A stretch of 64,000 nucleotides of DNA, from sequence record JN849462.1; one strand, written 5' to 3'. A model generated the notes under the pieces. The model was given only the letters and a program-made list of their open reading frames with translations, had not been told where the DNA came from and ran no database searches. A program made the translations under genes and the position numbers. This document shows, one piece after another, positions 24,301 to 59,380 of the stretch (position 1 is its first letter; the number at the start of each line of letters is the position of its first letter).

Positions 24301-24373
24301 AAAGGGTTGACTTCGGTCAGCCCTTTCTTGTATTATTCTCATATCGAAACGAAACACCGAAAGAGAGAATAAT
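24301..24373 (+). promoter_or_regulatory. promoter/terminator cassette
   Basis: AAAGGGTTGAC-TTCG-GTCAGCCCTTT, TATTAT, ATCGAAACGA, GAGAG RBS. Confidence 0.85.
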
Positions 24374-24688
24374 ATGAAATCTGACCTACGCACTATCCAA
24401 ACTCTAGTAGAACAAAAAGATGTAGCAATCGTTGTTAAAGAACAGTATCGAAATGCACTTGCATTCGCATACGGCTGCATGACTGGCGTTCAGCGTCAAG
24501 TATACCGAGACTACCACATGAGCGTGCTGGTTGAGAGATTTGACCTTGAATTCTGTGAAGCAAACGAAGTTATCTTACCTTACGGTGAGTTGAAGTCTGC
24601 AATCAAATTCATCAAAGATAGCTTGAGCGCGTCTGACTATGACGAACTGAAAGCACTATTTCAATTCAACATTAAACTGCCAGAGTAA
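24374..24688 (+). CDS. hypothetical protein
   Basis: First gene after the cassette. Confidence 0.8.
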   Translation: MKSDLRTIQTLVEQKDVAIVVKEQYRNALAFAYGCMTGVQRQVYRDYHMSVLVERFDLEFCEANEVILPYGELKSAIKFIKDSLSASDYDELKALFQFNIKLPE

Positions 24689-24693
24689 GAAGC

Positions 24694-25380
24694 ATGAAAC
24701 GATTTAAGAAACACATTAAAAAGTATGACGAGCATGGCGTAGTTCAGTATAATATGCTGATGATATTCGCTTTGATAGTCACAATATCAATGTCAATCGC
24801 ACTTGTTGCGTCAAATATTTTGTTTGCATTTGAGCTTTCAGCTAGTAACGCTAACATCAAAACACCTGGTGATGCATTCTGGACGGTTTGGATGGCTATG
24901 AGCACAATTGGATTTGGTGATCATTATCCCGTAACGACTGGTGGTAGATTTGTTATTGGTTCTATGTTTGTCGTTGGTGCGTCGCTGATTGGTCTTAACA
25001 TCGGTATCGCGAATGCGTGGATTACATCTAAGTTCGACAAAAGCATACAGAATCGCGTGTTGAAGAGTCAAAACGATGCTCTATTGCAGAAATTAGATCG
25101 TCTTGAGACACATCTAGGCATCGATCAAGAGGTGTTGTTTTCGAAAGATGCTCATGGTATAGATACAATGATTGACCAGTATTTTGACAGCAACGACAAA
25201 GCAGAGAGATTTGTTACACTCGGTCAAGATGATAGCGGTCGATATGTCGTGGCAATAAATCAGCAAATCATCGAAACACAAAAGACATCATTGAAATGGC
25301 ACACGTTCATTAAAGAAGATGATGCGACGAAATTCTACAAAGACACAAGTGAACTATTCCACACGGAGCTATTCATATGA
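24694..25380 (+). CDS. 2-TM potassium channel (KcsA-like) with C-terminal extension
   Basis: TM1, pore helix AFWTVWMAMS, filter TIGFGD, TM2 GRFVIG... Confidence 0.9.
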   Translation: MKRFKKHIKKYDEHGVVQYNMLMIFALIVTISMSIALVASNILFAFELSASNANIKTPGDAFWTVWMAMSTIGFGDHYPVTTGGRFVIGSMFVVGASLIGLNIGIANAWITSKFDKSIQNRVLKSQNDALLQKLDRLETHLGIDQEVLFSKDAHGIDTMIDQYFDSNDKAERFVTLGQDDSGRYVVAINQQIIETQKTSLKWHTFIKEDDATKFYKDTSELFHTELFI

Positions 25381-25874
25381 TTCGTAATATCTTATTTGCT
25401 GCTCTTGCAGCTATGACACTCGCAGCATGTGATAACAATTCTGCGACATTAGACACAAATGCTTACTATGCTGAACAAGAACAGCTATTAGTTGAAGCAC
25501 CGACGACTGAAATGTTTGATACACAGCCACCAGTTGTTCAACCTGTACAACAACCTGTACAACAACCGGTGATTATTCAGCAAGACGACGGGTTTGATCT
25601 AGGTGACGCAGCGATTGGTTTTGTTGCTGCTGAATTGATAGATGAAGTTGGTGATGCTTTCGAATCGAAGCATAAGAAGACTTACGTCGCGCCAGTGAAA
25701 CAGCCTGTAATTAAGAAAGTTACACCGTATCAAGCGCCTAAAAAGCCTGTAGTAGTTAAGCCAACTGTAGTCAAACCGAGCATAGTTGAGACGAAACCTG
25801 AGAAAAAAGAGGGTTTTTTCAAGAAAGCAGTCAAAAAGGTTAAAAAAGTTAAGCGTAGTAAACGCGGAAAATAA
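25377..25874 (+). CDS. lipoprotein with QPV repeats and Lys-rich tail
   Basis: Lipobox LAAC; QPVQQPVQQPV. Confidence 0.8.
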   Translation: MIRNILFAALAAMTLAACDNNSATLDTNAYYAEQEQLLVEAPTTEMFDTQPPVVQPVQQPVQQPVIIQQDDGFDLGDAAIGFVAAELIDEVGDAFESKHKKTYVAPVKQPVIKKVTPYQAPKKPVVVKPTVVKPSIVETKPEKKEGFFKKAVKKVKKVKRSKRGK

Positions 25875-25900
25875 AAAAGGGAGCGATTGCTCCCTTTTTT
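25873..25900. terminator. bidirectional terminator
   Basis: AAAAAAGGGAGC-GATT-GCTCCCTTTTTT. Confidence 0.85.
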
Positions 25901-25901
25901 G

Positions 25902-34896: not shown

Positions 34897-35102
34897 ATGT
34901 AGCAAATGTAATGTCACAACACGCATCAATCCAATATGCGCTGATTGAATATCTCAATGCACAATACGACGGCGAAGGTCATATCGAATATGCTGAATAC
35001 TTCGAAGACATTCAAGCGTGGGAAGTTCAATACTATGATGGTGAGTTCTTACATGAGCTAACCGTTACTGCACAAGCAATTGAGCAATGGATGAACAAAT
35101 GA
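34893..35102 (+). CDS. small acidic protein, paralog 1 of 3
   Basis: ATGA overlap; similar to the next two ORFs. Confidence 0.7.
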   Translation: MNVANVMSQHASIQYALIEYLNAQYDGEGHIEYAEYFEDIQAWEVQYYDGEFLHELTVTAQAIEQWMNK

Positions 35103-35305
35103 TTGACCAAACAATGTCAGACTACAGTCGCATCATGAATGCAATCGAAGAATATTTGGACTTACGTTCTTATCAATACACTGATGTCATTCAATATGAT
35201 AAAGAACGTAAAGGCTTTGATGTCGCGATTGTTGAAGAAACTGAAAACGGATCCGAATACCTAGATGTATTCGTGCCAAACGAAAGGCTAGAAACATTCC
35301 TATGA
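35099..35305 (+). CDS. small acidic protein, paralog 2 of 3
   Basis: ATGA overlap. Confidence 0.7.
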   Translation: MIDQTMSDYSRIMNAIEEYLDLRSYQYTDVIQYDKERKGFDVAIVEETENGSEYLDVFVPNERLETFL

Positions 35306-35535
35306 ATATAAACGATGTAATGATCTCACACGAGCAAATCATGAAGTCATTGCATCGTGTCATAGAAAGTCGCACTGATAATCGCATTGTCGAAATCACT
35401 TACGATAAAGACAAAATGTATTTCATTGTGACTCTAAGCTCATCCGATGCCGTTGCTGATGAAATCTATCAATGGAACATGAAAGTCACCAACGAAACAA
35501 TAGTCAATCAAATGCACATGGAGAAGTTCAGATGA
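35302..35535 (+). CDS. small protein, paralog 3 of 3
   Basis: ATGA overlap. Confidence 0.7.
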   Translation: MNINDVMISHEQIMKSLHRVIESRTDNRIVEITYDKDKMYFIVTLSSSDAVADEIYQWNMKVTNETIVNQMHMEKFR

Positions 35536-35705
35536 AACTACCAGAATACTTGAGCCACGTTACTGTAAAAGAAAACGTAATCATAATCGACTCAGCGCGA
35601 GATAAAGCGTTGGTCGTCGATTATCTAACCAATATCAAAGCACGATTCCATATCGTCCAAAAGACGATTAGCCGCTGCGAAATCCACGTGAAGAGAACAT
35701 CATGA
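35532..35705 (+). CDS. hypothetical protein
   Basis: ATGA overlap. Confidence 0.6.
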   Translation: MKLPEYLSHVTVKENVIIIDSARDKALVVDYLTNIKARFHIVQKTISRCEIHVKRTS

Positions 35706-36031
35706 AAGAACTACTGAACACACTTAACCAAGTTGAAACTCAAATCGCTAAACAGTTCGGTCTCGACCATCTATGGCACGGACTAGTAGACTGCACTAAT
35801 AGCGTATTCGCTGCCGATAACGAAGATCTACTAAAAGCACGTGAATTCCAATACGCTGATACAGAGAAAGCAATCACAGAAGGCGACTGCTATGGCATTG
35901 AAGTATACGGCACAAGCGTATGGCTATCAACTGATGGCAAATACGTATTGACTGTAGCTGATGACGGCTGTGGCAATCGAGACTTCTATATCTTTGATGC
36001 GTCTAAACACTCAGATTGCGAAATGTACTAA
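35702..36031 (+). CDS. hypothetical protein
   Basis: ATGA overlap, 109 aa. Confidence 0.8.
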   Translation: MKELLNTLNQVETQIAKQFGLDHLWHGLVDCTNSVFAADNEDLLKAREFQYADTEKAITEGDCYGIEVYGTSVWLSTDGKYVLTVADDGCGNRDFYIFDASKHSDCEMY

Positions 36032-36041
36032 AAAGTAATAA

Positions 36042-36107
36042 AAAGGGTTGACAGATGTCAGCCCTTTCGCGTATTATACACATATCAAATCAAGAAAGGA
36101 AAACATT
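36042..36107 (+). promoter_or_regulatory. promoter/terminator cassette
   Basis: AAAGGGTTGAC-AGAT-GTCAGCCCTTT, TATTAT, AAGGA RBS. Confidence 0.8.
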
Positions 36108-36299
36108 ATGTTCATCGTAACTATGCTAGGCGCAGTAATGTTCATCATTCTATTACTCGTGCTCGTAAACGAAATGCGCCCATTCATGACAGAAGAAAAC
36201 AAAACAATGTCATTGACGTTCGGCGTAGCTATCAGCTTAATCAATCTGTTCTTTATTACAAAGTACGCAAGTCTATTCCAATTACTACTAGAGAAATAA
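36108..36299 (+). CDS. small membrane protein
   Basis: Two hydrophobic segments; start at ATTATG 36108. Confidence 0.65.
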   Translation: MFIVTMLGAVMFIILLLVLVNEMRPFMTEENKTMSLTFGVAISLINLFFITKYASLFQLLLEK

Positions 36300-36561
36300 A
36301 TCATGTCACTAACAGCTATGCTTCTGATATTACTATGCTGTGCAATACTAACTGGCATTAGTGTATTCAGCTTCATCAACAAACCAGGAATTTTTAGCTT
36401 ACTGTTCTCATTCGTATTCGGCACAGTATCTTATATCATGCTAATGGCTATCGTATGAACGCAATGCTAATGATGCAAATCTATCTCTAATGATATTCGG
36501 CATCGCGCTACTCGTGCTCGGCAATATCACTATATGGTATATTAAACGTAGAGAGAAAACT

Positions 36562-36786
36562 ATGACACAAACAACTCAAACAATCCGCGCTGTCTGTATC
36601 GACAATCAATCAACTCGTATAGACAAACCAGAACCACCTACTGGCTTGACAGTAGGCAAAGAGTATGTCGTTCACATGTATAACGTAAACGAACATATCA
36701 ACAAACCACCTATGATTCGTATCACTAATGACGACAATAAACGCGCTAGTTATGTCGCTGCACGCTTTAAACTAATCATTCAATAG
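36562..36786 (+). CDS. hypothetical protein
   Basis: GAGAG RBS; LTVGKEY motif. Confidence 0.7.
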   Translation: MTQTTQTIRAVCIDNQSTRIDKPEPPTGLTVGKEYVVHMYNVNEHINKPPMIRITNDDNKRASYVAARFKLIIQ

Positions 36787-36795
36787 GAAATCATT

Positions 36796-37335
36796 ATGAA
36801 ATTAGTCACTACTACTCGTACAAAACATTATGTAAAGAACTTCGACTACATTCGTATGAAATCAGGCGAGAAATGCCGCATCGGTCATGTCGTACGTACG
36901 TTCAGCCCTAAAACAAAAGAACCTATGTTCATCATAGAAGACCAATATTCAGGTCACACAACTCAAATCAAAAACACTATGTGGGACTATGCTATTAGCT
37001 TAAACGATGAATGGCACAAAGTACATTTCCATTGGCACGACCGTGATGTGAACGAATCAAATGTTCTAGTATACTACAAAACAAAAGAAACAGTAGATGA
37101 ACTCAGTGTAGGCGATGTGCTTCAACTACGCACACGTAGATTCAAAAATAAAGATTACCAATACAGTGATGAACTATATGACGCGACAATCGTACTAATG
37201 AATCGCCACCAACTAGTCGTAAGCGTGTCTGGCAAGTTCGTGACGTTCGACACCACAAGCTTCCAATATGATAGCTATACTGCGGATATAGACGGCAAGT
37301 TTGTTTTAGATAGTGGCTGTTCACTGCGTGCGTAA
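36796..37335 (+). CDS. hypothetical protein, paralog of 38171-38776
   Basis: Shared ELSVGD...DATIV..VSGKFVTF segment. Confidence 0.8.
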   Translation: MKLVTTTRTKHYVKNFDYIRMKSGEKCRIGHVVRTFSPKTKEPMFIIEDQYSGHTTQIKNTMWDYAISLNDEWHKVHFHWHDRDVNESNVLVYYKTKETVDELSVGDVLQLRTRRFKNKDYQYSDELYDATIVLMNRHQLVVSVSGKFVTFDTTSFQYDSYTADIDGKFVLDSGCSLRA

Positions 37336-37850
37336 AACCGCTTAGAATCGCGCTCAGAGCGTGTCAGAGCATAGTACAACATTGATTGTTTTTGAAATAA
37401 CGCACCATGCCTCGTTTAAATCAACTTGGTAAGGAAAACCGTGTAAAAAGCCATGTGGTAAGATACGGTAAGTTATTGAAATGCGTTTGGAAATACACGA
37501 TTTTAATCAGTTGAAAGACTATGCTGCAACACGTGTGTAATATAGTGAAAAATCGGTGAACCCTCATCGGCTCCTGTGTAGTAAAATGCAGTCGCGGATG
37601 GTACTCACCTTATGAAAATCTAAATCGCTTCGCATCTTTCTGCTTGACAGCCAATGCCATGTTGTGAGAGAATGAGAAGAGATTTGAACCGCCGACGGAG
37701 GTAATTGTGATTACATTGGCGTTATTTTATATGAGTCGCGACATGCAATACAGTGAGCGACCAAGTGACTTGTATCTCGGTACATGTATTTTAGACTTTG
37801 CATTAATCATTACGTTGTTCTGTGGTGTAATGATGTTCACGGGGAATTGG
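37336..37850. other. non-coding gap, candidate replication origin
   Basis: Largest intergenic gap in the window; G/C skew inverts across it. Confidence 0.55.
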
Positions 37851-37852
37851 TA

Positions 37853-38161
37853 ATGAGACGATTTAAACTTGGTAATCTCTTACGCGGTGGTTTTGCTGGT
37901 GATTTTGAGACGATAGAAGAAGCATGGGAGAAGCTTGGTTCACGCTTTCTACTGTCATTTCCGTGTGATGCATGGTCAAAAGAGCGTGGTGTTTACATCA
38001 ATGAAGACGGCGGTCGGCATGTTTACATGTATGTAAAAGAAGAGAACAAGTATGGTCAGCTTGATTGGGCTATGTGTAAAGCTGATGTGTTTTATATGAA
38101 AGACCGTGTGCCGGTTACTGCTGACGATTATGAATACTGTCGTGATGCTGAATTTTTCTAA
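37853..38161 (+). CDS. hypothetical protein
   Basis: GGGG RBS-like; start moved to ATG 37853. Confidence 0.7.
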   Translation: MRRFKLGNLLRGGFAGDFETIEEAWEKLGSRFLLSFPCDAWSKERGVYINEDGGRHVYMYVKEENKYGQLDWAMCKADVFYMKDRVPVTADDYEYCRDAEFF

Positions 38162-38170
38162 GGGTTAAAG

Positions 38171-38776
38171 ATGAAAAGAGTTGAGTTACACAAGAAAGTG
38201 GTAGACAAGCAAGCTGTTCTTCCAGATCATTCTCATGTGCAAGTTGAGACGTATTACCACACGTACAAGGGTTACATGAATTATCTAACTGGTTTGCGTG
38301 GTGTAGATGGTGATCAGTATCTGCTTGTTACAGATGATGGTCGTTTTGTTCGAGTAGAAGAGAAGCATCTAAACGGTCAAGAGCAGAAACAGCGCAAGAT
38401 CAGTGGTGGTTTAATTGATGTACGAGCGCGTTTGCAACTGCCAGCGAAAGATTGGGATTGGTATGACTGTATCTGGCGTAATGGTAAGATTGTTTACAAG
38501 TACCGCGAGACAGATTTCGTTACTGAAGAACACGAGTTAGTGGTTGGTGAGATAGTAGACATTTACGAGTCTAACGACTTTAATGGTGATTATCCGCATG
38601 ATGCTACAGTGGTGTTATCTAGACCGAAGCAAATGGTACTTGAAGCATATGGTAAACTAGTAGTGTTTACAGTGCCGAAAGAGCCATGTGGTGATAGTTT
38701 AGTCTCTGATTGTGGTGATTATCGTATTGCTGGTAATTACGCCGCGAGTGAATACGACGAAGAACTGCATTCGTAA
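38171..38776 (+). CDS. hypothetical protein, paralog of 36796-37335
   Basis: ELVVGE...DATVV..AYGKLVVF segment. Confidence 0.8.
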   Translation: MKRVELHKKVVDKQAVLPDHSHVQVETYYHTYKGYMNYLTGLRGVDGDQYLLVTDDGRFVRVEEKHLNGQEQKQRKISGGLIDVRARLQLPAKDWDWYDCIWRNGKIVYKYRETDFVTEEHELVVGEIVDIYESNDFNGDYPHDATVVLSRPKQMVLEAYGKLVVFTVPKEPCGDSLVSDCGDYRIAGNYAASEYDEELHS

Positions 38777-38783
38777 TTGAAGA

Positions 38784-38859
38784 AAAGGGTTGACGCTTGT
38801 CAGCCCTTTCTTGTATTATCTCTATATCGAAACGACATCGACTAACTAGAGAGAAAATT
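38784..38859 (+). promoter_or_regulatory. promoter/terminator cassette
   Basis: AAAGGGTTGAC-GCTT-GTCAGCCCTTT, TATTAT, ATCGAAACGA. Confidence 0.85.
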
Positions 38860-39216
38860 ATGTTTAACGCTACTACTGTTCTGAATCAACTAACTGCTTC
38901 AAACCATGGTCATTCACGTCTTGTTGCTATGACTGGTGCTAAGAATATCATGCAATCTGTAGAAAATCGTTTTGTTTCTTTCAAGTTGCCGAAAGCAGTA
39001 CGTGGTATTAACTACGTGAAAATCACTCTGACTGACGCTGATTTGTATGATATTGAGTTTGGTAAGCAATCTAGCAAAGCTTGTCCAGACATGAAAGCAA
39101 TTGGTATTAAAGTGATGATGCCGCATTACGCTCAGAAGAAAGTCGTAAATGGTGTATACAACGACATGCTAAAAGAGATTTTCGAGCAAGAAACTGGTCT
39201 TTATTTGTCACTTTAA
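38860..39216 (+). CDS. hypothetical protein
   Basis: Start at ATTATG 38860. Confidence 0.8.
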   Translation: MFNATTVLNQLTASNHGHSRLVAMTGAKNIMQSVENRFVSFKLPKAVRGINYVKITLTDADLYDIEFGKQSSKACPDMKAIGIKVMMPHYAQKKVVNGVYNDMLKEIFEQETGLYLSL

Positions 39217-39219
39217 GCA

Positions 39220-39292
39220 AAAAGTGGTTGCATGGTGTAGCCACTTACTGTATTATCTCTATATCGAAACGAGATACGAAAGAGAGAACATT
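39220..39292 (+). promoter_or_regulatory. promoter/terminator cassette
   Basis: AAGTGGTTGCAT-GGT-GTAGCCACTT, TATTAT, ATCGAAACGAGATAC. Confidence 0.85.
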
Positions 39293-39466
39293 ATGACTTA
39301 CGCAAACGCTACTAAAATCGACGCAATTGAACTTGTTATGTCAATGACAGAAGACCAGTTCTACGACCTTATTGCAGATTCTAATGCAAATGGCGATTTC
39401 GAGTTTTCTGCAAAAGTCATGAAAGTTCAATCCGACTTACGTCGCGCTGGTAAAATTAACTACTAA
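39293..39466 (+). CDS. small hypothetical protein
   Basis: Start at ATTATG 39293. Confidence 0.7.
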   Translation: MTYANATKIDAIELVMSMTEDQFYDLIADSNANGDFEFSAKVMKVQSDLRRAGKINY

Positions 39467-39490
39467 TTCGCCAAAAAAAGAGAGAAAATT

Positions 39491-39880: not shown

Positions 39881-39885
39881 AATGC

Positions 39886-39956
39886 AAAAAGTGGTTGCGT
39901 GCTGTAGCCACTTTCTGTATTATCTCTATATCGAAACGAGATACAGAGAGAACATT
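39886..39956 (+). promoter_or_regulatory. promoter/terminator cassette
   Basis: AAAGTGGTTGC...GTAGCCACTTT, TATTAT, ATCGAAACGAGATAC. Confidence 0.85.
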
Positions 39957-40205: not shown

Positions 40206-40216
40206 GGGATAAAAAT

Positions 40217-44366: not shown

Positions 44367-44652
44367 ATTGGAGTCGCAGATTGCGGCTCTTCAACGGGAA
44401 TTACAAGACGAGCGTAACCGATGTCGTCATACTCGCGTTACATATGAGTTCAAGTCGAATACGGGTAATTACGATCCGCATTCTGATTGCTACTGGAATG
44501 AAGTGCAGTGCATTGACTGCGGTTCTCGTATGCACTTCGACTCAGATGATGACAATGATAATTATCGCCTTGCTGGTGTAATCGGTTCTGAAGGTAAAGT
44601 TGAGAAACACGATTACGAAACATATTTGAAAGTGAAAAAGGAACTAGAATGA
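44350..44652 (+). CDS. hypothetical protein
   Basis: GYD/Cys-containing ORF overlapping the tk end. Confidence 0.7.
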   Translation: MDRVLELESQIAALQRELQDERNRCRHTRVTYEFKSNTGNYDPHSDCYWNEVQCIDCGSRMHFDSDDDNDNYRLAGVIGSEGKVEKHDYETYLKVKKELE

Positions 44653-44999
44653 AGTACGTACGTTATACTGAATTCAATGACCACGAAGGTGAGACATGGC
44701 ATCGTTTTATCCCGATGACAGATCCGTGTTTAGACAAGTTTCTAGATGTCATGAAGCTAGTTGAAGATGACCCCGAAGAAGCGTATTCGATTGAAGTCGA
44801 TGCCAACGGAAAGCTTGTCCAATACGATGAGTCATACGTAAAAGTGCTAGTGGACGAAGCAGCCATGTATATGAGCGGTTACATGAACATGTATGCCGTA
44901 TGTAATATTAACGAAAAGCTATTCGAATGGGTTGCCGATGTCGATAATGACGTTGAAGCCGTTTGCGAAATGCTATACAAAATGGGGTGGGCGAAATGA
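44649..44999 (+). CDS. hypothetical protein
   Basis: ATGA overlap. Confidence 0.8.
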   Translation: MKYVRYTEFNDHEGETWHRFIPMTDPCLDKFLDVMKLVEDDPEEAYSIEVDANGKLVQYDESYVKVLVDEAAMYMSGYMNMYAVCNINEKLFEWVADVDNDVEAVCEMLYKMGWAK

Positions 45000-45319
45000 G
45001 CCAAGCACTATATGACGCAGTAAAAGCGTACAACGACGAACATGGTTATTCAAACGAGCCAGATTCGATGTACGAGACGTTTGTAGAATGCCTAAGCAAA
45101 CGCATTGTACAAGAAGAAACCGAATCTGAGCATCGTTGGTATGATGTTCGTTCTGTGGTACATGCTGTTGACATCGACGGCGTAGAGCGTTACTTCGCTA
45201 CGTTTGATTATCACATTACTGGTGATAACTGTGCCAGTGACATGGATTTAGACATGCCGACGCTTGATGATGTAACAGAAGTTCATCCGCATCAAGTAAC
45301 CATGACTGTTTACAAGTAA
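44996..45319 (+). CDS. hypothetical acidic protein
   Basis: ATGA overlap. Confidence 0.8.
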   Translation: MSQALYDAVKAYNDEHGYSNEPDSMYETFVECLSKRIVQEETESEHRWYDVRSVVHAVDIDGVERYFATFDYHITGDNCASDMDLDMPTLDDVTEVHPHQVTMTVYK

Positions 45320-45321
45320 CG

Positions 45322-45346
45322 AAAGCCCCTTAATTGGGGCTTTTTT
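45322..45346 (+). terminator. intrinsic terminator (copy 2 of an identical 25-mer)
   Basis: AAAGCCCCTTAATTGGGGCTTTTTT. Confidence 0.88.
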
Positions 45347-45387
45347 AGGTCTGAAGAAAAATAAAAGAAAAAAGTTTAAGTTTTTTG

Positions 45388-45481
45388 CAAAAAGTGGTTG
45401 CATGGCGAATGGTAATTTCCTATTATAGCTACATCGAAACGAGATACACAATCTTAAACGACTTAACTAAGAGAGAACATT
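45388..45481 (+). promoter_or_regulatory. early promoter cassette without internal hairpin
   Basis: GTGGTTGCAT, TATTAT, ATCGAAACGAGATAC, GAGAGAACATTATG. Confidence 0.85.
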
Positions 45482-46096
45482 ATGCCAAGCAATCTGAACA
45501 ACATCAAAATCAAAGACATTCGCGAATTCGGTATCAGCACTATCTCATACAAAGATTTCACTATCTTTGCTACTGAAGAAGCTGACGAGATTGTTCTACG
45601 CGCTGCTGTAGAATACGATGAGAACTCAGACGCTCACGTATCAGTTACTGAAGTGTGTGGTGACACATTGAAAGAAGCGAAAGCTTACCTGCAAGCTGAA
45701 TTGAACGACGTTGAGCACACTGCTGGTCAGATTGCTGAAATGGCGATTGCTCTTGACTTCACTGGTCAATACGACGTTCTAGTTGAGAAATTCAACGCGC
45801 CGAAAGCTAAGCCAGTTGCAGTAGTCGCTCCTGTAGCTAAAGTATCTGCTCTAGTAGAAGAGACTAAGCCTGAGCCAAAAGCTGAAGCGCCTAAGAAGAC
45901 TAACGCACGCGGTGCTGCTGCACGTGAGCTAGTCGCTGAGAAAGCAACTGAAGTTACAGGTCTGACTGACATCACTTTCGAACAGCGTGGCAAATACAAA
46001 GACTGGTACATCATGGGTACTGACGCTGAAGGCGAAGCATTTGAGCAACGTCTAGACGTATTCAAGAAGAAACTAGTAGTAATGGGAGCATTGTAA
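45482..46096 (+). CDS. hypothetical protein with Ala/Pro/Lys linker
   Basis: First gene after the cassette. Confidence 0.85.
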   Translation: MPSNLNNIKIKDIREFGISTISYKDFTIFATEEADEIVLRAAVEYDENSDAHVSVTEVCGDTLKEAKAYLQAELNDVEHTAGQIAEMAIALDFTGQYDVLVEKFNAPKAKPVAVVAPVAKVSALVEETKPEPKAEAPKKTNARGAAARELVAEKATEVTGLTDITFEQRGKYKDWYIMGTDAEGEAFEQRLDVFKKKLVVMGAL

Positions 46097-46275
46097 TGGT
46101 TAATCAAGTACGACGTATCAATGGTGATGATTACATTGTCAAGTCTCACCGTGACAACAAGTGTGAAGTACAAAAGCTTTCACATATTGAATTAGTTCTT
46201 GACACGTACGACGTTCACGAGCTAGAATCTTTCGAACTTATTACAACACTATCTGATACTTTTTAAGGACATATT

Positions 46276-46836
46276 ATGAACATCAAAGCAGGTCAAATCG
46301 TAGTTTCAACGGCAACATCACACAAGTCAGTTGGCAAGAATGGCGAGTACGGATTGGTTATGCACGCCAACAACACTCTAGCAATCGTATATTGGCCAAA
46401 CGCAGGTCGTTGTGTCAAACAGTTTTTCAAAAATGCGACTATTGCATATGCGCCGTCTAGAACTACGTTTAATACCAATATCAATCGCGATAAAGCCGAA
46501 GCTGCATACGCACAATACAAAAACGATACTAAACCAGCAAAACGCAAACAAGAAAGTGAAGATAATAGTCAACCGTCATTGAATACGCCGATGGGATATG
46601 CAGTTGCGTTGATGCGCAATGACTTATCAGCACGAGAACTAATTTCGATGCATGATGGTCTTATTTCGTCTGAGCAAATGTATTTGAGACACGTTGAGCG
46701 AGTTACTGGCGAATCAGCCTCGATTCACAGTGCGAAGATACAGTTACAGAAAACACTGCGTGCTCAAGAGCTATCAGAAATCGACGCAGAGATTAAGCGC
46801 CTTGAGCAACTAAAAGCACAACTTGCAAACAAATAA
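46276..46836 (+). CDS. hypothetical protein, C-terminal coiled coil
   Basis: AAGGA RBS. Confidence 0.8.
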   Translation: MNIKAGQIVVSTATSHKSVGKNGEYGLVMHANNTLAIVYWPNAGRCVKQFFKNATIAYAPSRTTFNTNINRDKAEAAYAQYKNDTKPAKRKQESEDNSQPSLNTPMGYAVALMRNDLSARELISMHDGLISSEQMYLRHVERVTGESASIHSAKIQLQKTLRAQELSEIDAEIKRLEQLKAQLANK

Positions 46837-46868
46837 AACTTTATACCCAAACTTGAGAGAAAAACATT

Positions 46869-47426
46869 ATGAACAAATCAGTACAACTAGTAATCGCATT
46901 CGCTGGAACTTACATGCCAACTGCATACGAACTTGGTCAGAACTTCTATGATGAAAGCAAAAGCAAGACATATATTGACTCGGTGCGTCGTCAATGTGCT
47001 AAAGAGCTTGAAGAAGGCGTGAAAGCGGGATTGCTAACTCGTGTTAAAGGTAAGAAGTATGCTGGTTCAACTAAGTTCGCGCATCGTTACACATGTCGTA
47101 AGTACGCTGATAAGATTGGTCTAAAGAACGTACCTTACCGTGACGGTCGTAATGCTCCACCACGCACTGGCATTATTGCACTGATTGAAAAATGCGTTGC
47201 TGAAATGATTATCGACAAAACGTACCGTCACAAGAAGTTCACTTCAAACGAAGTTGGTATCGCTACTGTCATTCAATACATTCGCGAAGGAAAAACACCT
47301 GCTGCACGCAAGATCTTGAGCAGCCACGCGAACACGTATGAAAAGAACGTGAAGTACGTTGTTCGCAATCACCGTGGTGTTCTTGATGACAAAGGGCTTA
47401 ACTTACGCGACTTAGTGAAAGCATAA
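46869..47426 (+). CDS. basic hypothetical protein
   Basis: GAGAG RBS, Lys/Arg-rich. Confidence 0.8.
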   Translation: MNKSVQLVIAFAGTYMPTAYELGQNFYDESKSKTYIDSVRRQCAKELEEGVKAGLLTRVKGKKYAGSTKFAHRYTCRKYADKIGLKNVPYRDGRNAPPRTGIIALIEKCVAEMIIDKTYRHKKFTSNEVGIATVIQYIREGKTPAARKILSSHANTYEKNVKYVVRNHRGVLDDKGLNLRDLVKA

Positions 47427-47472
47427 TGCAACCAATAGATGTAAGAGATAGAATTGAACACGGGGCTACCAA

Positions 47473-48066
47473 ATGCACAAAATGACAGTTCATGTATGTG
47501 ACTACTGCGACTTTCAAAGCATATTACCAAAAGAAGTCGAAGCGCATGAAAAGCGTTGCGCACAGCACGACACGTTTTTAAAAGTCAAAGCGATTCAGCA
47601 AGCACAAGCTCATGCCTATCTCGACACGATTCGATTGCGTGCATGTTCGTTCAAGCACTTGTTTGAAATCATTCAAGACGAAGAAGATATGATCATCGAA
47701 GCGGTTCAAGTGTTGCACTTCTACGGCGAAGAGCGTAAAGCACCGCGTATGATGAACTTCAAATGGAAATACTGTCATTTCTGTCATGAGTACGAGCAGT
47801 TTCGAGAACAGCGTAAGACACACAGCGCGCCAGTTGGTGAGAAAACTTGCCCGATGTGGTCAGAAAACAAAGACGACATCAAGCGCGGTCTTGCTTGTGC
47901 AATTGAATGCAATTGGGAACATCAAGGTAGTCGTAAATCAGTTGACCGCTATCGTAATTATCTTGGTTACATCCCGGGTGTGAATACAGGCTCAGGTGGC
48001 GGTGTTGATAAAGTTCATTACTATCTGACACTTTGGAAAGATGATTTCCCATTAATTCAAAAATAA
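47473..48066 (+). CDS. hypothetical protein, N-terminal C2H/C finger
   Basis: CDYC...HEKRC. Confidence 0.75.
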   Translation: MHKMTVHVCDYCDFQSILPKEVEAHEKRCAQHDTFLKVKAIQQAQAHAYLDTIRLRACSFKHLFEIIQDEEDMIIEAVQVLHFYGEERKAPRMMNFKWKYCHFCHEYEQFREQRKTHSAPVGEKTCPMWSENKDDIKRGLACAIECNWEHQGSRKSVDRYRNYLGYIPGVNTGSGGGVDKVHYYLTLWKDDFPLIQK

Positions 48067-48068
48067 CC

Positions 48069-48142
48069 AAAAAAGGGTTGCTTCGGCAGCCCTTTTCTCG
48101 TATTATAGCTTTATCAAAACGAGATACGAAAGAGAGAACATT
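48069..48142 (+). promoter_or_regulatory. promoter/terminator cassette
   Basis: AAAAGGGTTGC-TTCG-GCAGCCCTTTT, TATTAT, ATCAAAACGAGATAC. Confidence 0.85.
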
Positions 48143-48385
48143 ATGACTTCAGTAATCAACGAAAAATTCCTAGCAGTGATTCACGCAGCACAAGACGCAG
48201 TTGTTGCTGAAAATGCTTCTTTCGATTACGTAGCATCTAACGCTGAGATCGCAACTGACATTTGGCACAATCACATGACTCCATTCGAGCGTCTAGAGTT
48301 TGTTCAGTTGTTCACTAACGAGTCTCTAGTGATTGAACGCCGTTACGACCTTGCGCTTTGGTTAATTGAAAATTCTTTGAAATAA
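48143..48385 (+). CDS. hypothetical protein
   Basis: First gene after the cassette. Confidence 0.8.
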   Translation: MTSVINEKFLAVIHAAQDAVVAENASFDYVASNAEIATDIWHNHMTPFERLEFVQLFTNESLVIERRYDLALWLIENSLK

Positions 48386-48388
48386 TGC

Positions 48389-48443
48389 TTGACGAGTTTC
48401 ACCAAAAAGCCGATAATAGCTACATCAAAACGAGGAGAACATT
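48389..48443 (+). promoter_or_regulatory. early promoter cassette
   Basis: TTGACG, GATAAT, ATCAAAACGA, GGAG RBS. Confidence 0.75.
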
Positions 48444-48734
48444 ATGAACTACACAACTGAAACAATCAAAGCATGTCTTGAACTAGTTGCAACTTTGAAA
48501 TCAGACAAGATCACAAAAGGCAACGTAGAGAAGCTACGCGCTGCATATCGTGCGCAAGCTGACCAAGAAGTGTCTATTGCTATGTCTTCTATCTGTTCTA
48601 TTGCAGAGCGTCATTTAGACCGCAAAGCAGCGAATCGTCCTGCAATGAGCAAGTGTGCTGAGTCTTACTTGAACTTTGATTGGCGTACAATCCCGGGTTG
48701 TGTTGGTTTTTCACGTGAAGTACTAGAGGTGTAA
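48444..48734 (+). CDS. hypothetical protein
   Basis: ATTATG start. Confidence 0.8.
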   Translation: MNYTTETIKACLELVATLKSDKITKGNVEKLRAAYRAQADQEVSIAMSSICSIAERHLDRKAANRPAMSKCAESYLNFDWRTIPGCVGFSREVLEV

Positions 48735-48735
48735 C

Positions 48736-49017
48736 ATGGTTAGTCTTTTAAAAGCAGTTAATAGCGAGTTCACGAGCTATACAGGTCGTGTGCTGCCTGA
48801 TGCGATTGCAAGTAAAGTCGCTCGTACATGTGAGCAAGAATATTGGGCTACGTTTTACATGCACGATTGCACGTCACTAGACACCGCTGACCGTGATGTA
48901 GCTTTCGACCTCATTGCAAATGAGCTTGGTCTAGAAGATGGTTGGCCAATGTACGGATCGTCTGACGAGTACAAAACAAAGTTTCAACAAGAACTTGAGA
49001 AATTGGAGTTAGCATGA
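48736..49017 (+). CDS. hypothetical protein
   Basis: GAGGT RBS. Confidence 0.8.
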   Translation: MVSLLKAVNSEFTSYTGRVLPDAIASKVARTCEQEYWATFYMHDCTSLDTADRDVAFDLIANELGLEDGWPMYGSSDEYKTKFQQELEKLELA

Positions 49018-49298
49018 GTCTAATAGGTAAAATCAAAGAATTTCTGTTCCCGACGATCACGCCGCCAGCAATTGGTGATAAATTTCGTCAAATCGAGAAG
49101 AATTGGGTTGACGTTGATCGCGATTCAACTATAATCGTAATCACTAACGTATCGAAAGATGGTCGATACATCAAATACGAGTTTACACAGATTGAAGGTA
49201 AGCCTGTAGCAGTCACACACGTTGGTAGAACATCATCAAGTGTTTCATATGAGTTCCCGACGCATCAACTTTATAGACTATTCGAGAAAGTAGAATGA
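49014..49298 (+). CDS. hypothetical protein, IGD-type SH3-like paralog
   Basis: AIGDKFRQ...IVITNVSKDGRYIKYEF. Confidence 0.75.
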   Translation: MSLIGKIKEFLFPTITPPAIGDKFRQIEKNWVDVDRDSTIIVITNVSKDGRYIKYEFTQIEGKPVAVTHVGRTSSSVSYEFPTHQLYRLFEKVE

Positions 49299-49711
49299 CA
49301 CGAATCAATTGTATGCCGGTTGAAACGCTCTCAGACAAGCATTTGCTTGCAGAGTACAAAGAGATAACCAGACCGTTTAACAAGGTTGAGAAGCGCATAC
49401 AAGCGCATACAATGGGTGATGTGAGCATTCCTGAGCACTACGTACTTGGTACAGGTCACGAAACGTTCTTTTTTGATAAGTTGCATTATCTTTACGTTCG
49501 TTATCGTGACTTGTGTGAAGAACTATTGCACCGCGGTGTGAATATCAACGTTGAACAGTTCGATGAAATCTGCGAATGGATTGAGAACACGTTTGTTGAC
49601 ACGCCGTATTGGAACTATTGGACACCGCGCCCAGAAGACATGTATTTGAACATGGCGCGACTTGTGAAGCGCAGCAACTTTGATGCTGCAAAAGCTGAAG
49701 CACTAAACTGA
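49295..49711 (+). CDS. denV: endonuclease V (pyrimidine dimer DNA glycosylase)
   Basis: MTRIN...LSDKHLLAEYKEITR...YVLGTGHETFFFDKL, colinear with T4 DenV. Confidence 0.95.
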   Translation: MTRINCMPVETLSDKHLLAEYKEITRPFNKVEKRIQAHTMGDVSIPEHYVLGTGHETFFFDKLHYLYVRYRDLCEELLHRGVNINVEQFDEICEWIENTFVDTPYWNYWTPRPEDMYLNMARLVKRSNFDAAKAEALN

Positions 49712-49721
49712 GGAAATTATT

Positions 49722-50153
49722 ATGACACTAGCACATTTTCCACAAGACGAATTGCCTGAGCGTTTTGATTTTAAAATGCCTGACGAGCCTGAAACTCGAA
49801 AGACGCATTGCAAAGTAACTGAAGAGAAAGACAAGAACATCTTCAAGATCATCATGTTCTGGTTCTTCATGTCGATATTTGCAATCGGTGTAGCAGCGTT
49901 CTTTGGGTTTTTCAGCAAGATAGAAATCGGTGATCGTTATTACCTTCTGCAAGACGTGGGATGGGAACGCTCTCAGAGTGTATTATTCGGTATTGAAATC
50001 ACAGACGTGAATTACGCAGCCGAGCGAGTACGGTACAAGTACATCAACTTAGATGCTGTAGATGAGAAAGAAATGGCGTTTAGTGCTTTGAAACGTTCTT
50101 ACGTACCGGCTGACAGTGTTGAAATCAATCACTCTATGGAGAAAACAAAATGA
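49722..50153 (+). CDS. membrane-anchored SH3-like paralog
   Basis: TM segment then EIGDRYY...IEITDV...VRYKY. Confidence 0.75.
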   Translation: MTLAHFPQDELPERFDFKMPDEPETRKTHCKVTEEKDKNIFKIIMFWFFMSIFAIGVAAFFGFFSKIEIGDRYYLLQDVGWERSQSVLFGIEITDVNYAAERVRYKYINLDAVDEKEMAFSALKRSYVPADSVEINHSMEKTK

Positions 50154-55678: not shown

Positions 55679-55893
55679 TGCTAGATGCAATTCATTACAC
55701 GATCATCAAGTCACCAATCTTGTTCACTGTAATAGAAGCGTTTCTTCTTCTATTCACAGCGGGAGCAATGGAGTGGATACCCGAAACAGACGAATCAGAA
55801 ATTGGAATAGCTGTATGTTTGTTTTTGATCTTTATGTCACTAATGGTATTCATTGCATACATGTGGGTTTTCTACGAACCATCATATTTCTAA
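55678..55893 (+). CDS. small membrane protein
   Basis: TAATG coupling; two TM segments. Confidence 0.7.
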   Translation: MLDAIHYTIIKSPILFTVIEAFLLLFTAGAMEWIPETDESEIGIAVCLFLIFMSLMVFIAYMWVFYEPSYF

Positions 55894-55914
55894 GACGCTT
55901 CGGCGTCTTTTTTT
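55892..55914 (+). terminator. intrinsic terminator, UUCG loop
   Basis: AAGACGC-TTCG-GCGTCTT-TTTTT. Confidence 0.9.
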
Positions 55915-55935
55915 CGGTTTGAAGAAAATAATTGC

Positions 55936-56007
55936 AAAAAACGGTTGCATGAAACAACGAATAGACCTAATATAGCTACATCGAAACGAGATACGAAAGA
56001 GAACATT
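55936..56007 (+). promoter_or_regulatory. early promoter cassette without internal hairpin
   Basis: AAAAAACGGTTGCATGAAA (same as 7025), TAATAT, ATCGAAACGAGATAC. Confidence 0.85.
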
Positions 56008-57271: not shown

Positions 57272-58009
57272 ATGAAAAAAACTAAAATCACAGCACAAGT
57301 CGGTATGATGTCTCTTTGTGGTGTATCAGGTTCATTCCCATTCTCACACGGTAATTACTGTAGCAACACACAAGGCTATTACTTTGTCAATCTATGGGCC
57401 GAGAATCTTAAACATCTAGTAGCTAACGATTACTTGCCCGACGGGCAAATCGAAGTGTTACTGTTTAGAGATAATAAGCGCCAGAACTACGTTTATGCCT
57501 ACGTTATTGACGAGCGTGTGCCGAAAGAAGCACTCCATGCGCCATACTTCTGTGGTATTGCGACCTCAGTTGAGATCATGCGCTACCATCATCAAACGCC
57601 AGACGATAAATGTCTATGCTATTCTGAAGACCACAGATTGCTTAGTATGCGTTCGCAAGACATGAAAGGTCGTTCAGTACGGCATTGCCCTGAGTGTGAC
57701 ACTCGCTACACGATTCAGCTACCAAGGCGCAACGATGTCTTTCGTGTTCAGACGTTCTCCGAGGATGGTTGGCACAATTGGAATCTGTTCTATCACAAAG
57801 ACGGTGTTTTCTACACAATTCCCGAAAACGAGCCGGTAGCTGCCGAAGACATCATCAAGGTCGACGCGAAACCTGTCAGTAACTTCGGTACTGGCGAAGA
57901 ACAGCAAGCGGCAATCTCGCTTGAAGAGTTCAACTTCAGCGGCGTTGTTGAGAAAGCTGTCCCGAAAATCGAGAATGGTCAGACTCGATATGAAGTTGTA
58001 CAAAAATAG
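57272..58009 (+). CDS. hypothetical protein
   Basis: 245 aa; internal CPEC. Confidence 0.8.
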   Translation: MKKTKITAQVGMMSLCGVSGSFPFSHGNYCSNTQGYYFVNLWAENLKHLVANDYLPDGQIEVLLFRDNKRQNYVYAYVIDERVPKEALHAPYFCGIATSVEIMRYHHQTPDDKCLCYSEDHRLLSMRSQDMKGRSVRHCPECDTRYTIQLPRRNDVFRVQTFSEDGWHNWNLFYHKDGVFYTIPENEPVAAEDIIKVDAKPVSNFGTGEEQQAAISLEEFNFSGVVEKAVPKIENGQTRYEVVQK

Positions 58010-58400
58010 TACAAAAATCGGCGTTCCTGCGGAGCTGAGTGTCTGGCGACACTGTATCAGCTCCTTGGGTATTGAGGTACTTATGGTATTCACTGAAGAG
58101 CAGCTTGTTCAAATCGAGCACAACTACTCGCATATTGATACTGTCAATCTTGCAGATAGAAAGGGCGTGCCACAAGCGAAGTATGTCATAGAGATACGAC
58201 AAGGCACGTATACTAAATTCAAAACATCTTGGTTAAGTCAAGATTCATGCGAAGAACGAGATATTGACCCAGAGCTAGTCGGCTACTGGATTCTATCTCA
58301 CGAAATCGACCCTTATTGGTACTCAGTTCAAGAATGTTTGAAAGAGTATGAGTGGGAACGAGCACACGAAGTAACAGTCACAACATGGGAAGCAATTTAA
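57990..58400 (+). CDS. hypothetical protein
   Basis: Stop TAATG-coupled to the next gene; start uncertain. Confidence 0.6.
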   Translation: MKLYKNSTKIGVPAELSVWRHCISSLGIEVLMVFTEEQLVQIEHNYSHIDTVNLADRKGVPQAKYVIEIRQGTYTKFKTSWLSQDSCEERDIDPELVGYWILSHEIDPYWYSVQECLKEYEWERAHEVTVTTWEAI

Positions 58401-58774
58401 TGAGCACAAATTCAAGCATTAGTATTACACAAGAAAACGGTCACGTTCGTTCAATCTACTGTCACTGGGATGGTGGTATGTGGACGGGTGGCGTAGCTGA
58501 AACCCTGATCGAGAACTATCGCACCGAAGCTGAAGTCAATGCACTGATCGATCAAGGTGGATGTAGCTCACTTGGCGGTACAATCGAAGATAGCGTTTTC
58601 TACGCACGTGACCGCGGTGAAGAACTCGAAATCTACATCGACAACATCCCAGAGCAAGAATACAACTACATGTTCCGCGACGGAAAGTGGTTTGTATGTT
58701 GCCCTGAAACGAATTGGGAAGATGTCGTTCTAACAAATGAACTTCGTGTTGAACTTGAAAACTGTGAAGAGTAG
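58400..58774 (+). CDS. conserved phage protein (SIYCHWDG type)
   Basis: MST.S.I...VRSIYCHWDG...LIENY...EYNYMF. Confidence 0.75.
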   Translation: MSTNSSISITQENGHVRSIYCHWDGGMWTGGVAETLIENYRTEAEVNALIDQGGCSSLGGTIEDSVFYARDRGEELEIYIDNIPEQEYNYMFRDGKWFVCCPETNWEDVVLTNELRVELENCEE

Positions 58775-58776
58775 TC

Positions 58777-59139
58777 ATGCCAGAATATAAACCCGCAGAA
58801 ACAATCAAAGACCCTTCAGGTCGAGAATATCAGATCGGCGCGTATTATAAAGTGCGCTGCACTGACAATGGGCCGTTCGGTTATGGTGAAACTAAAATCG
58901 TCCCAATGACTGAAAATTTTGATTTTGCATATCACACAGTCGAAGAAGTTCACGGTGTTTTTGGTACAATTCGCAAGCCACCACCGAAACTAATCGAAGG
59001 TAGAGCATATATGTTCTACATGTGCGATTCTAACGAGCGTAGCGTGGGTATATGGGGCGGAATAGACAAAGGCTTTATATGCGGTCCCGTTAATCTTAAA
59101 ATGTCTCAAATCGACGCACAGACGCTCTCAGAGGTATAG
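58777..59139 (+). CDS. hypothetical protein
   Basis: 120 aa ORF in the operon. Confidence 0.75.
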   Translation: MPEYKPAETIKDPSGREYQIGAYYKVRCTDNGPFGYGETKIVPMTENFDFAYHTVEEVHGVFGTIRKPPPKLIEGRAYMFYMCDSNERSVGIWGGIDKGFICGPVNLKMSQIDAQTLSEV

Positions 59140-59319
59140 ATGAAATGTGAAATCTGTGGACACCCCGACGGGTACAGTGACGGTGTTGGTATGATTCTGT
59201 GCAATGACTGCTACAGTGCAGCAAGAAAGCCATTAATCGGTTACACTGAAGACAATCAGCCAGTTATTGTGCCACCGTCACTTGTAGACAAAATCAAAAA
59301 ACTTTTCGAAAAGGGTTGA
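59140..59319 (+). CDS. small Zn-finger-like protein (below cutoff)
   Basis: CEIC...LCNDC; GAGGT RBS. Confidence 0.65.
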   Translation: MKCEICGHPDGYSDGVGMILCNDCYSAARKPLIGYTEDNQPVIVPPSLVDKIKKLFEKG

Positions 59320-59380
59320 CTACGGTCAGCCCTTTCTTGTATTATTCTCATATCGAAACGAAACACGAAAAGAGAACATT
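59310..59380 (+). promoter_or_regulatory. promoter/terminator cassette
   Basis: AAAGGGTTGAC-TACG-GTCAGCCCTTT, TATTAT, ATCGAAACGA; almost identical to 24301. Confidence 0.85.

Follow-up and report, generated by a model that had tools for sequence, protein, structure and literature searches.

Can one short intergenic element end a transcript and start the next one? The question arises from a 64,000-nt stretch of the genome of Vibrio phage phi-pp2 (record JN849462.1, positions 62001-126000; hereafter the window, whose positions are offset by 62000 from those of the record), where a first-pass annotation had pointed to seven early promoters with the -35 box inside a hairpin and a T-rich run leading into the -10 box TATTAT. 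Phi-pp2 is a T4-like "schizo-T-even" phage of the Straboviridae, species Schizotequatrovirus KVP40, and phage KVP40 is ~99% identical to it across window positions 38000-41000 (megablast). All seven elements can be read directly in the sequence, and they are very probably PeSL-type units (promoter-early stem-loop cassettes) of a KVP40-type T4-like phage, built on the same layout as bacterial promoter-coupled terminators and combining an intrinsic terminator and an early promoter in one. The proposal that a single unit of ~70 bp would act both as the upstream terminator and as the sigma-70-type early promoter of the next gene is well supported by its sequence features and by analogy with homologous systems.

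The anatomy, as read directly at the seven sites, is an 11-bp stem with a loop of 3-5 nt and the -35 hexamer inside the stem, and the fused cassette begins ~70 bp before the next ATG. From 5' to 3', the unit consists of an AT-rich leader with the upstream stop codon, an A-run, a GC-rich arm closing on the -35 box (GGGTTGAC, GGGTTGC or GTGGTTGC), the 3-5 nt loop, the complementary arm within the promoter spacer, and a U-rich tail that runs on from the stem into the -10 box TATTAT. Its 3' end is a conserved 5' untranslated region (5'UTR) of ~30 nt (ATCGAAACGA...), followed by a Shine-Dalgarno sequence (SD) and the ATG. The arms read AAAGGG...CCCTTT in 5/7 cassettes and AAGTGG...CCACTT in 2/7, and the two -35 classes differ in their promoter spacer, TTGAC copies having 18 nt and TTGC copies 17 nt. 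The -10 box follows the end of the stem at 4-5 nt, and counted from its first base the ATG is 36-44 nt further on. The cassettes had been described as starting within ~10 nt of the upstream stop codon, which holds with a refinement (0-10 nt): the stop lies 4-10 nt before the stem in six of them and inside the stem in the seventh. The 5'UTR motif ATCGAAACGA begins 6 nt after the -10 box and is present in nearly all cassettes (e.g., window 24343-24373, 38826-38859 and 39263-39292); possible roles are those of an initial transcribed sequence, a signal for translation or a site of binding. Among the IMG/VR matches listed, the same motif also trails TATTAT in many unrelated, hairpin-less contigs of ~45-50 kb.

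All seven cassettes lie on the + strand. The first (24297-24373) follows rIIB and has an A-run, the stem 24301-24311/24316-24326 with loop TTCG, the -35 box TTGACT at 24307-24312, the -10 box TATTAT at 24331-24336, a U-rich tail and the conserved 5'UTR, which leads to the ATG of pp2_143 at 24374; its sense RNA folds with a free energy (dG) of -16.8 kcal/mol and a z-score of -5.7. Cassette 2 (36038-36107) has the stem 36042-36052/36057-36067 with loop AGAT, TTGACA at 36048-36053, the -10 box at 36072-36077 and the ATG at 36108 (dG -16.5, z -5.4), and cassette 3 (38780-38859) has the stem 38784-38794/38799-38809 with loop GCTT, TTGACG at 38790-38795, the -10 box at 38814-38819 and the ATG at 38860 (dG -18.5, z -6.2). 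The next two belong to a GTGG/CCAC variant. In cassette 4 (39218-39292) the stem is 39222-39232/39236-39246 with loop TGG, the -35 box TTGCAT is at 39228-39233, the -10 box at 39251-39256 and the ATG at 39293 (dG -15.9, z -3.2); in cassette 5 (39884-39956) the stem is 39888-39898/39904-39914 with loop GTGCT, TTGCGT is at 39895-39900, the -10 box at 39918-39923 and the ATG at 39957 (dG -19.8, z -6.7). Cassette 6 (48067-48142) represents a TTGC/GCAG variant, with the stem 48071-48081/48086-48096, loop TTCG, TTGCTT at 48078-48083, the -10 box at 48101-48106 and the ATG at 48143 (dG -16.5, z -4.9). Cassette 7 (59307-59380) has the stem 59310-59320/59325-59335 with loop TACG, TTGACT at 59316-59321, the -10 box at 59340-59345 and the ATG of pp2_229 at 59381. 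Here the stop codon of pp2_228 is the TGA (59317-59319) within the TTGAC, and the open reading frame (ORF) thus enters the stem; pp2_228 matches phrog_15572 over its full length (1-59 of 59).

These cassettes are not a chance assortment of patterns. The pattern GGTTG..CCNYT..GTATTAT has seven matches in the window and none in each of 100 shuffles (0 expected). A genome-wide scan free of any assumption on the arms, in which TTG-N3-N16-18-TAWWAT sites were folded and kept if the TTG paired into the spacer, returned the same seven in the window with no other strong one, and five more elsewhere in the genome. In total, the phi-pp2 genome holds 14 hairpin cassettes whose -10 box is good and 2 whose -10 box is degenerate (TATTCT, TATGCT); all are on the + strand between 21 and 152 kb of the record, and the late structural region holds none. 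An Rfam search of the window gave no matches, and Pfam and PHROGs searches with the genes after each cassette returned only families of unknown function.

Is the hairpin selected, and if so, in which molecule? Pairing was examined in hairpins collected across the entire phi-pp2 genome and in the homologous 43-68 kb of KVP40, VH1_2019, V05, ValKK3 (~85% identity) and QD01 (~78%), to which IMG/VR loci having the -10 box and 5'UTR motif in common were added, giving 47 unique hairpins; base pairs were tabulated per hairpin and not from a structure-aware alignment. The loose IMG/VR patterns (GGTTG-N17-20-GTATTAT-N6-ATC and TATTAT-N6-ATCGAAACGA) hit mostly unrelated contigs among the matches listed and were used after filtering only. 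The V05 record (MT135024.1, 157 kb) looks like a partial or rearranged assembly, with a block of tRNA and structural genes (extracted stretch 15576-19854) abutting the homologue of window ~37800, and therefore only its colinear part was used.

The sense RNA of the seven cassettes folds at -15.9 to -19.8 kcal/mol (z -3.2 to -6.7). As the first-pass annotation had stated, the loops vary and a U.G wobble is retained: the first T of TTG stands opposite a G in 7/7, and the GTGG class has a second G.U pair. Covariation at the RNA level is observed directly. The change from GGG/CCC to GUGG/CCAC, already recognized as compensatory, gains one U-A pair, and the change from UUGAC/GUCAG to UUGC/GCAG loses one A-U pair, the spacer going from 18 to 17 nt; in two IMG/VR contigs, of the size of Aeromonas phages, both arms are altered (GGGCUUGUC/GAUAAGCCC and GGGCUUGC/GUAGGCCC). 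The TTG is invariant in the 5' arm of 47/47 unique hairpins, and opposite to it we found CAG (36), TAG (7), CAA (2), CGA (1) and TAA (1), every one of these 3'-arm variants being able to pair (Watson-Crick or G.U), with no transversions. A strand asymmetry is likewise directly visible, as the antisense RNA folds worse in 6/7 cassettes (mean difference 4.6 kcal/mol) because each G.U becomes a C.A mismatch. UNCG loops occur in 21/47 hairpins. The orthologous cassettes are conserved in ValKK3 and QD01, with the same stems and different loops, and the loop of the cassette after rIIB is UUCG in phi-pp2, ValKK3 and QD01 and UACG in KVP40 and VH1.

Together, the pairing variants, the loop bias and the strand asymmetry point to a selected structure placed in the sense transcript, and these sequence patterns speak against the idea that the repeat exists mainly to serve as a protein operator or a DNA cruciform. 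The independent compensatory events are few (~4-6), so that the case rests on the combined evidence and not on a formal covariation statistic. Two other treatments of the hairpins were set aside: a MAFFT alignment of 37 hairpins, which was not structure-aware and placed its single gap at column 2, and a covariance model of the TTGAC class, which aligned the TTGC/GTGG inner stems as loop insertions and mixed in antisense hits. The latter model recovered all copies and two new ones.

The features following the stem are those of a terminator. Tails were scored in the style of TransTerm, with the stem counted to its last C, UUUCUUGUAUUAU or a similar sequence as the tail, and random 15-mers of the window as the null (mean tail score -2.1, 1st percentile -3.8). 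The fused tails scored -3.4 to -4.6, all beyond the 5th percentile and 5/7 beyond the 1st. A simple terminator scan of window 35000-50000 flagged 3/4 of the cassettes lying there, and the homologous hairpin carries a terminator annotation in Salmonella phage Munch. With regard to initiation, the -35 hexamers (TTGACT, TTGACA, TTGACG, TTGCAT, TTGCGT and TTGCTT), the spacer of 17 or 18 nt and the -10 box TATTAT fit a sigma-70-like promoter by sequence. An A-rich UP-like element sits upstream of T4-type early promoters, at the place where the A-run lies in these cassettes.

We infer termination and initiation in phi-pp2, with their efficiencies, from the sequence and from homologous systems, and propose the following mechanism. 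A polymerase arriving from upstream would transcribe the hairpin and the U-run and let the RNA go around the -10 box, about 10-13 nt short of the start site used on the same DNA; the upstream A-run may pair with the U-run and lengthen the stem. Release is predicted 7-9 nt past the GC stem, where the -10 box begins; with initiation expected 7 nt beyond that box, termination and start would be about 11-13 nt apart. The same bases, as double-stranded DNA, would present the UP-like A-run, the -35 box, the spacer and the -10 box to the host sigma-70 polymerase early in infection. The net effect would be a compact insulator and restart point between early transcription units.

Several points weigh against such a dual function. 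Interruptions break up the fused U-tails (e.g., UUUCUUGUAUUAU or, for the GTGG class, UUACUGUA), whose scores are weaker than those of the separate terminators in the same window (-5.1 to -5.6 in four cases), and thus termination may be partial; by their sequence, the fused versions look like real but possibly leakier terminators. The stop codon is only 0-10 nt from the stem, and a terminating ribosome masking the 5' arm could lower termination. Furthermore, a promoter-bound polymerase covers the hairpin DNA, so both functions cannot run simultaneously on one template. Four RNA runs, picked by species label, gave no reads matching window 35500-41000 and so provide no test of RNA ends, and our literature search found no KVP40 transcriptome.

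The separate terminators just mentioned belong to promoter copies without the fused hairpin. The first-pass annotation had listed four such copies, at 7025, 45388, 55936 and 63781, each with its own terminator, and a hairpin with a run of six or seven U was indeed found upstream of all four (-10 boxes at 7055, 45421, 55968 and 63811), 15-50 nt upstream of the -35 box. All lie on the + strand. The copy at 6986-7090 has its terminator at 6986-7010 (UUCG loop, U6), TTGCAT at 7031-7036, TATTAT at 7055-7060, the same 5'UTR and the ATG at 7091, and the one at 45322-45481 has its terminator at 45322-45346, TTGCAT at 45398-45403, TATTAT at 45421-45426 and the ATG at 45482. At 55892-56007 the terminator (55892-55914; UUCG loop, U7) is followed by TTGCAT at 55945-55950, TAATAT at 55968-55973 and the ATG at 56008, and at 63732-63851 the terminator (63732-63757) is followed by TTGACG at 63788-63793, TAATAT at 63811-63816 and the ATG at 63852. 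All the copies listed earlier were real, but the list was one short: a twelfth promoter copy of the window (48386-48443, +), with TTGACG at 48389-48394, GATAAT at 48412-48417, the same 5'UTR and the ATG at 48444, has neither a fused nor a separate terminator. A terminator thus accompanies 11/12 promoter copies, fused in 7 and just upstream in 4. The five promoter copies that lack the repeat have folding z-scores near 0, no better than shuffles.

Compared with the ordinary terminator-then-promoter regions of the T4 early type, to which the four unfused units of the window correspond with the same promoter and 5'UTR, the fused cassettes let the two elements share ~26 bp and have an intergenic region that is ~30-90 bp shorter. 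One unfused copy bears on how the two forms are related. The promoter at 45384-45426 still has a complete GTGG-class 5' arm (AAGTGGTTGCATGG), its spacer being unrelated and the 3' arm missing, and this hairpin-less state is conserved in all five relatives (KVP40, VH1, V05, ValKK3 and QD01). Judging from the sequence, it could derive from an old loss of the 3' arm once a separate terminator existed, or it could be a recombinant of cassette types.

How new is this element? The resemblance to PeSLs that had been suggested was correct and even understated, as PeSLs have already been published for nt-1/KVP40 (PMC4122927), with an overlap of the stem and the -35 box described earlier (PMC2839356). 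Arbiol 2010 (PMC2839356) defined the PeSL of phages RB49 and phi1 as a stop codon in an AT-rich leader, a sigma-70 promoter, a stem-loop of a G-run and a C-run, an SD and an ATG, with five subclasses according to the position of the stem, one of them overlapping the -35 box, and with G-T stem pairs marked. In the lacZ assays of that study the promoters were strong (~13,000 Miller units) and one stem-loop terminated comparably to rrnB T1; mini-circles formed between neighbouring PeSLs were found in RB49 and phi1, the crossovers mapped in RB49 fell between the -10 box and the ATG, outside the stem, and a protein binding to GGGG...CCCC was speculated upon. Comeau, Arbiol and Krisch 2014 (PMC4122927), on the pairs PST/T4 and nt-1/KVP40, gave for nt-1/KVP40 the stem consensus A3-4G3-loop-C3T3-4 and the promoter TTGYVH-N17-TAWWAT, and showed the KVP40 ORF231/232/233 locus in their Fig. 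6B. Cassette 7 (window 59310) lies between pp2_228 and pp2_229, whose KVP40 homologues are KVP40.0231 and KVP40.0232; nt-1 matches only the gene after pp2_229, which reproduces the nt-1 deletion of the KVP40.0232 homologue.

The phi-pp2 cassettes share with PeSLs the repeated intergenic motif with a stop in the AT-rich leader, -35 and -10 boxes, stem-loop, SD and ATG, and match the nt-1/KVP40 consensus exactly; G-T pairs and an overlap of stem-loop and -35 box are likewise among the features given for PeSLs, and both cassettes and PeSLs have been linked with indels, in the phi-pp2 comparison for 5/16 events. They differ in that the published loop includes TTGAC...GTCAG, whereas here the -35 hexamer is paired in an 11-bp stem with a loop of 3-5 nt. 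The promoter, terminator and mini-circle assays on PeSLs come from RB49 and phi1 only and not from the KVP40 group, and phi-pp2 lies outside those papers; in the phi-pp2 genome paper promoters were predicted with NNPP, and the stem-loop motif goes unmentioned. The finding is therefore already known, a rediscovery of the PeSL published for KVP40/nt-1 from which nothing essential differs, and the addition is that the -35 hexamer itself is counted as paired. For phi-pp2, which is shown to carry the PeSLs published for its sister strain KVP40, the gain is mainly one of annotation, i.e., 12 putative early transcription-unit boundaries in 64 kb of mostly "hypothetical" genes.

The second counterpart is bacterial. 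A preprint (Fletcher 2026, bioRxiv 10.64898/2026.08.19.745784) describes promoter-coupled terminators, in which the stem-loop provides the -35 box and the T-tract aids the -10 box; the 3' end lies <=35 bp upstream of a start on the same strand, with a mode of ~10 bp from termination to start, and a promoter-bound polymerase raises termination. It adds that terminator palindromes can double as transcription-factor sites, and phages and PeSLs go unmentioned. As in the phage cassettes, stem-loop DNA serves as the -35 box with an A-tract upstream, the elements lie between tandem genes and shorten the intergenic space, and the start ~10 bp after the termination site compares with the distance of about 11-13 nt predicted here. 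On the other hand, the bacterial elements are chromosomal with diverse stems, and their ends were mapped by Term-seq and Cappable-seq, whereas the phage geometry is a prediction only, and the phage cassettes form a near-identical repeated family with a conserved 5'UTR and SD. The result thus joins two literatures without mutual citation, that on phage PeSLs and that on bacterial promoter-coupled terminators.

The cassette is also not confined to the T4-like phages of Vibrio. An 88-nt cassette query alone matched 145 GenBank phage records, which beyond the Vibrio schizo-T-evens include Klebsiella RaK2 (Alcyoneusvirus), Pectobacterium CBB (Mimasvirus), Cronobacter CR3 (Vequintavirinae) and Aeromonas AP1 (Ceceduovirus), as well as Salmonella phage Munch, Serratia phage BF, Erwinia phages and Stenotrophomonas phage RAS14. 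The five that were read (RaK2, Munch, CR3, AP1 and CBB) have an A-run, GGGTTGAC, a UUCG or UUGG loop, GUCAGCCC (GUCAACCCC in CR3), a U-run, a -10-like hexamer, an SD and an ATG, and sit 2-10 nt after the upstream stop, except that the RaK2 annotation runs an ORF through instead. The unit in common, which directly follows a stop codon and is often present several times in one genome, is an A-run, GGGTTGAC, a tetraloop, GTCAGCCC, a T-run, TATWAT, an SD and an ATG. In IMG/VR the exact form AAGGGTTGAC-N4-GTCAGCCCTT was found at 75 sites in ~28 contigs, nearly all of 90-411 kb, with a TAnnnT hexamer at 17-18 nt in 65/75. The U.G form (GTCAGCCC) accounts for these 75 sites, versus 6 for the perfect palindrome in which A replaces the G (GTCAACCC), and UNCG or GNRA loops occur in 40 of the 70 scored (the 65 sites and 5 perfect-palindrome copies with a -10 hexamer).

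One sequence solution, wobble included, thus recurs across very different large phages. It is conceivable, though rather doubtful, that the cassette is a horizontally moving regulatory part or a convergent optimum for the gamma-proteobacterial polymerase, the wobble being selected to keep the RNA stem while breaking the TTGAC of the opposite strand, so that no divergent antisense promoter would arise; the wobble G would turn the mirror-image TTGAC of the opposite strand into CTGAC with RNA pairing kept. In the literature that we searched, no discussion of the cross-family sharing or of the wobble bias was found. The recurrence across phages makes the cassette a natural compact part combining insulator and promoter, and a convenient marker of early-gene boundaries in unannotated jumbo phages.

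Do the cassettes also make genes exchangeable? The first-pass annotation had proposed that each gene module is self-contained and can be exchanged by recombination between cassettes. The first part did not hold for most intervals: by the annotation, a single gene lies in only 2/10 of the intervals between successive promoter copies, and the rest hold several, up to ~20. The second part stood to a degree. Pairwise blastn between phi-pp2, KVP40, VH1_2019 and V05 revealed, for the window region, 16 separate insertion, deletion or replacement events, 5/16 touching a cassette unit and 1/16 with both breakpoints in cassettes. This last, a gene replacement bounded by cassettes on both sides, is directly observed: in VH1_2019 the -10 box, the UTR and gene pp2_172 after cassette 3 are swapped for a gene of 1044 nt that brings a TATCAT box and a UTR of its own, the left breakpoint being at the -10 box of cassette 3 and the right one in the A-run of cassette 4. 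In another event, KVP40 and VH1_2019 carry between the rIIB stop and cassette 1 a 916-bp insertion with a GIY-YIG homing endonuclease (KVP40.0145/0146) that phi-pp2 is without (window 24288-24291). The ATG following cassette 4 is the exact starting point of a gene replacement relative to KVP40 and V05, an extra ORF of 283 bp sits between a stop codon and the separate terminator at 45322, and the end of a replaced gene stops ~24 nt short of the terminator at 55892. The homology of QD01, VS1 and VS2 to the region of cassette 7 starts at window 59309, adjoining the first stem base at 59310.

These cases have to be set against the remaining 11/16 events, which lie away from cassettes (at least 200 nt off, most at least 600 nt), two of them involving homing endonucleases. 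The enrichment compared with random gene junctions is significant only under a lenient null with one junction per event (P = 0.009), and loses significance under a conservative one with two (P = 0.11). Nor is divergence consistently higher in the cassettes (5.8%) than in their flanks (6.7%); in this check for gene conversion some sites were 3-4 times more diverged than the flanks (48101 and 59340, relative to KVP40). Many similar copies would provide short patches of homology where genes get swapped occasionally, and the cassettes are exchange points sometimes, not usually, the role being real in at least one case. Overall, then, the sequence favours the dual terminator and promoter unit and the likeness to PeSLs as originally proposed, with exchange by recombination applying in part and self-contained modules in a minority of intervals. 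Also among the indels, pp2_119 (window 9914-10615, -), a homing endonuclease gene of phi-pp2, is missing from KVP40.

The inverted repeat itself could be explained in other ways. A dimeric phage or host protein might bind it as a DNA operator that switches the early promoters, the RNA hairpin being incidental. Repressor sites usually take the form of an inverted repeat centred on a -35 box, very distant phages share the GGG...CCC core, and the protein-binding speculation of Arbiol 2010 (PMC2839356) and the remark on palindromes and transcription factors in Fletcher 2026 also speak for it. We nevertheless consider an operator quite unlikely, in view of half-sites whose spacing varies (loops of 3, 4 and 5 nt) and arms that gain or lose a base pair, a palindrome that is systematically imperfect as DNA (T.G at 75 sites versus 6 perfect), the enrichment of RNA-stabilizing UNCG/GNRA loops with a U-run after every stem, and the unfused copies, which carry unrelated terminator stems in place of the repeat. 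A DNA role of another kind, as a cruciform or preferred recombination site mainly for gene shuffling with termination secondary, would account for the gene replacement bounded by two cassettes, for the four further events one-ended at a cassette unit, and for the mini-circles between PeSLs in RB49 and phi1 (PMC2839356). It is very unlikely, as the wobble asymmetry and the tetraloop bias indicate RNA, the RB49 crossovers fell between the -10 box and the ATG and not in the stem (PMC2839356), 11/16 indels are elsewhere, and the cassettes keep conserved orthologous positions across species.

If the repeat acts as RNA, it might still be a 3'-end stabilizer or processing signal that blocks exonucleases on read-through transcripts and not a site of termination. 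Stable UNCG-loop stems at the ends of coding regions, and fused U-tails weaker than those of the separate terminators, would agree with this. The geometry of stem and U-run fits intrinsic terminators, though, the hairpin-less copies use canonical terminators instead of bare hairpins, and a lacZ assay showed termination by the homologous stem-loop of RB49 (PMC2839356), which makes this explanation unlikely, even if both roles are compatible. Finally, the cassettes could be paralogues duplicated from one ancestral promoter that was palindromic by chance, with no selection on the hairpin, and the few stem sequence classes, with their ~4-6 independent compensatory events, leave some room for this. 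Such a by-product is hardly credible given that loops diverge and stems stay paired in orthologues 78-85% identical, that distant contigs change both arms jointly, and that only pairing-preserving transitions occur opposite the TTG. An intrinsic terminator selected in the sense transcript and fused to an early promoter remains the explanation that we prefer.

The genes of the window lie on the + strand except for four annotated on the - strand (pp2_099, 119, 129 and 146). They are mostly small hypothetical early genes, together with cd, folE, queC, gp31, rnlB, rIIA/B, dda, natV, tk, denV, nadR and pnuC. Outside the window, two further GGGTTGAC...GTCAGCCC hairpins are found at record 60321-60362 and 151384-151425, with weak -10 boxes (TATTCT and TATGCT) at the usual 18-nt spacing, one of them coming after nrdC; from their sequence, they may be decayed promoters retained as terminators. 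Another hairpin cassette (record 61936-61976, -10 box TATCAT) directly precedes a 246-codon ORF at window 6-746 (+). This ORF has no coding sequence in the phi-pp2 record, its end overlaps the opposite-strand pp2_099, and in KVP40 a shorter gene, KVP40.0102, is annotated in this position.

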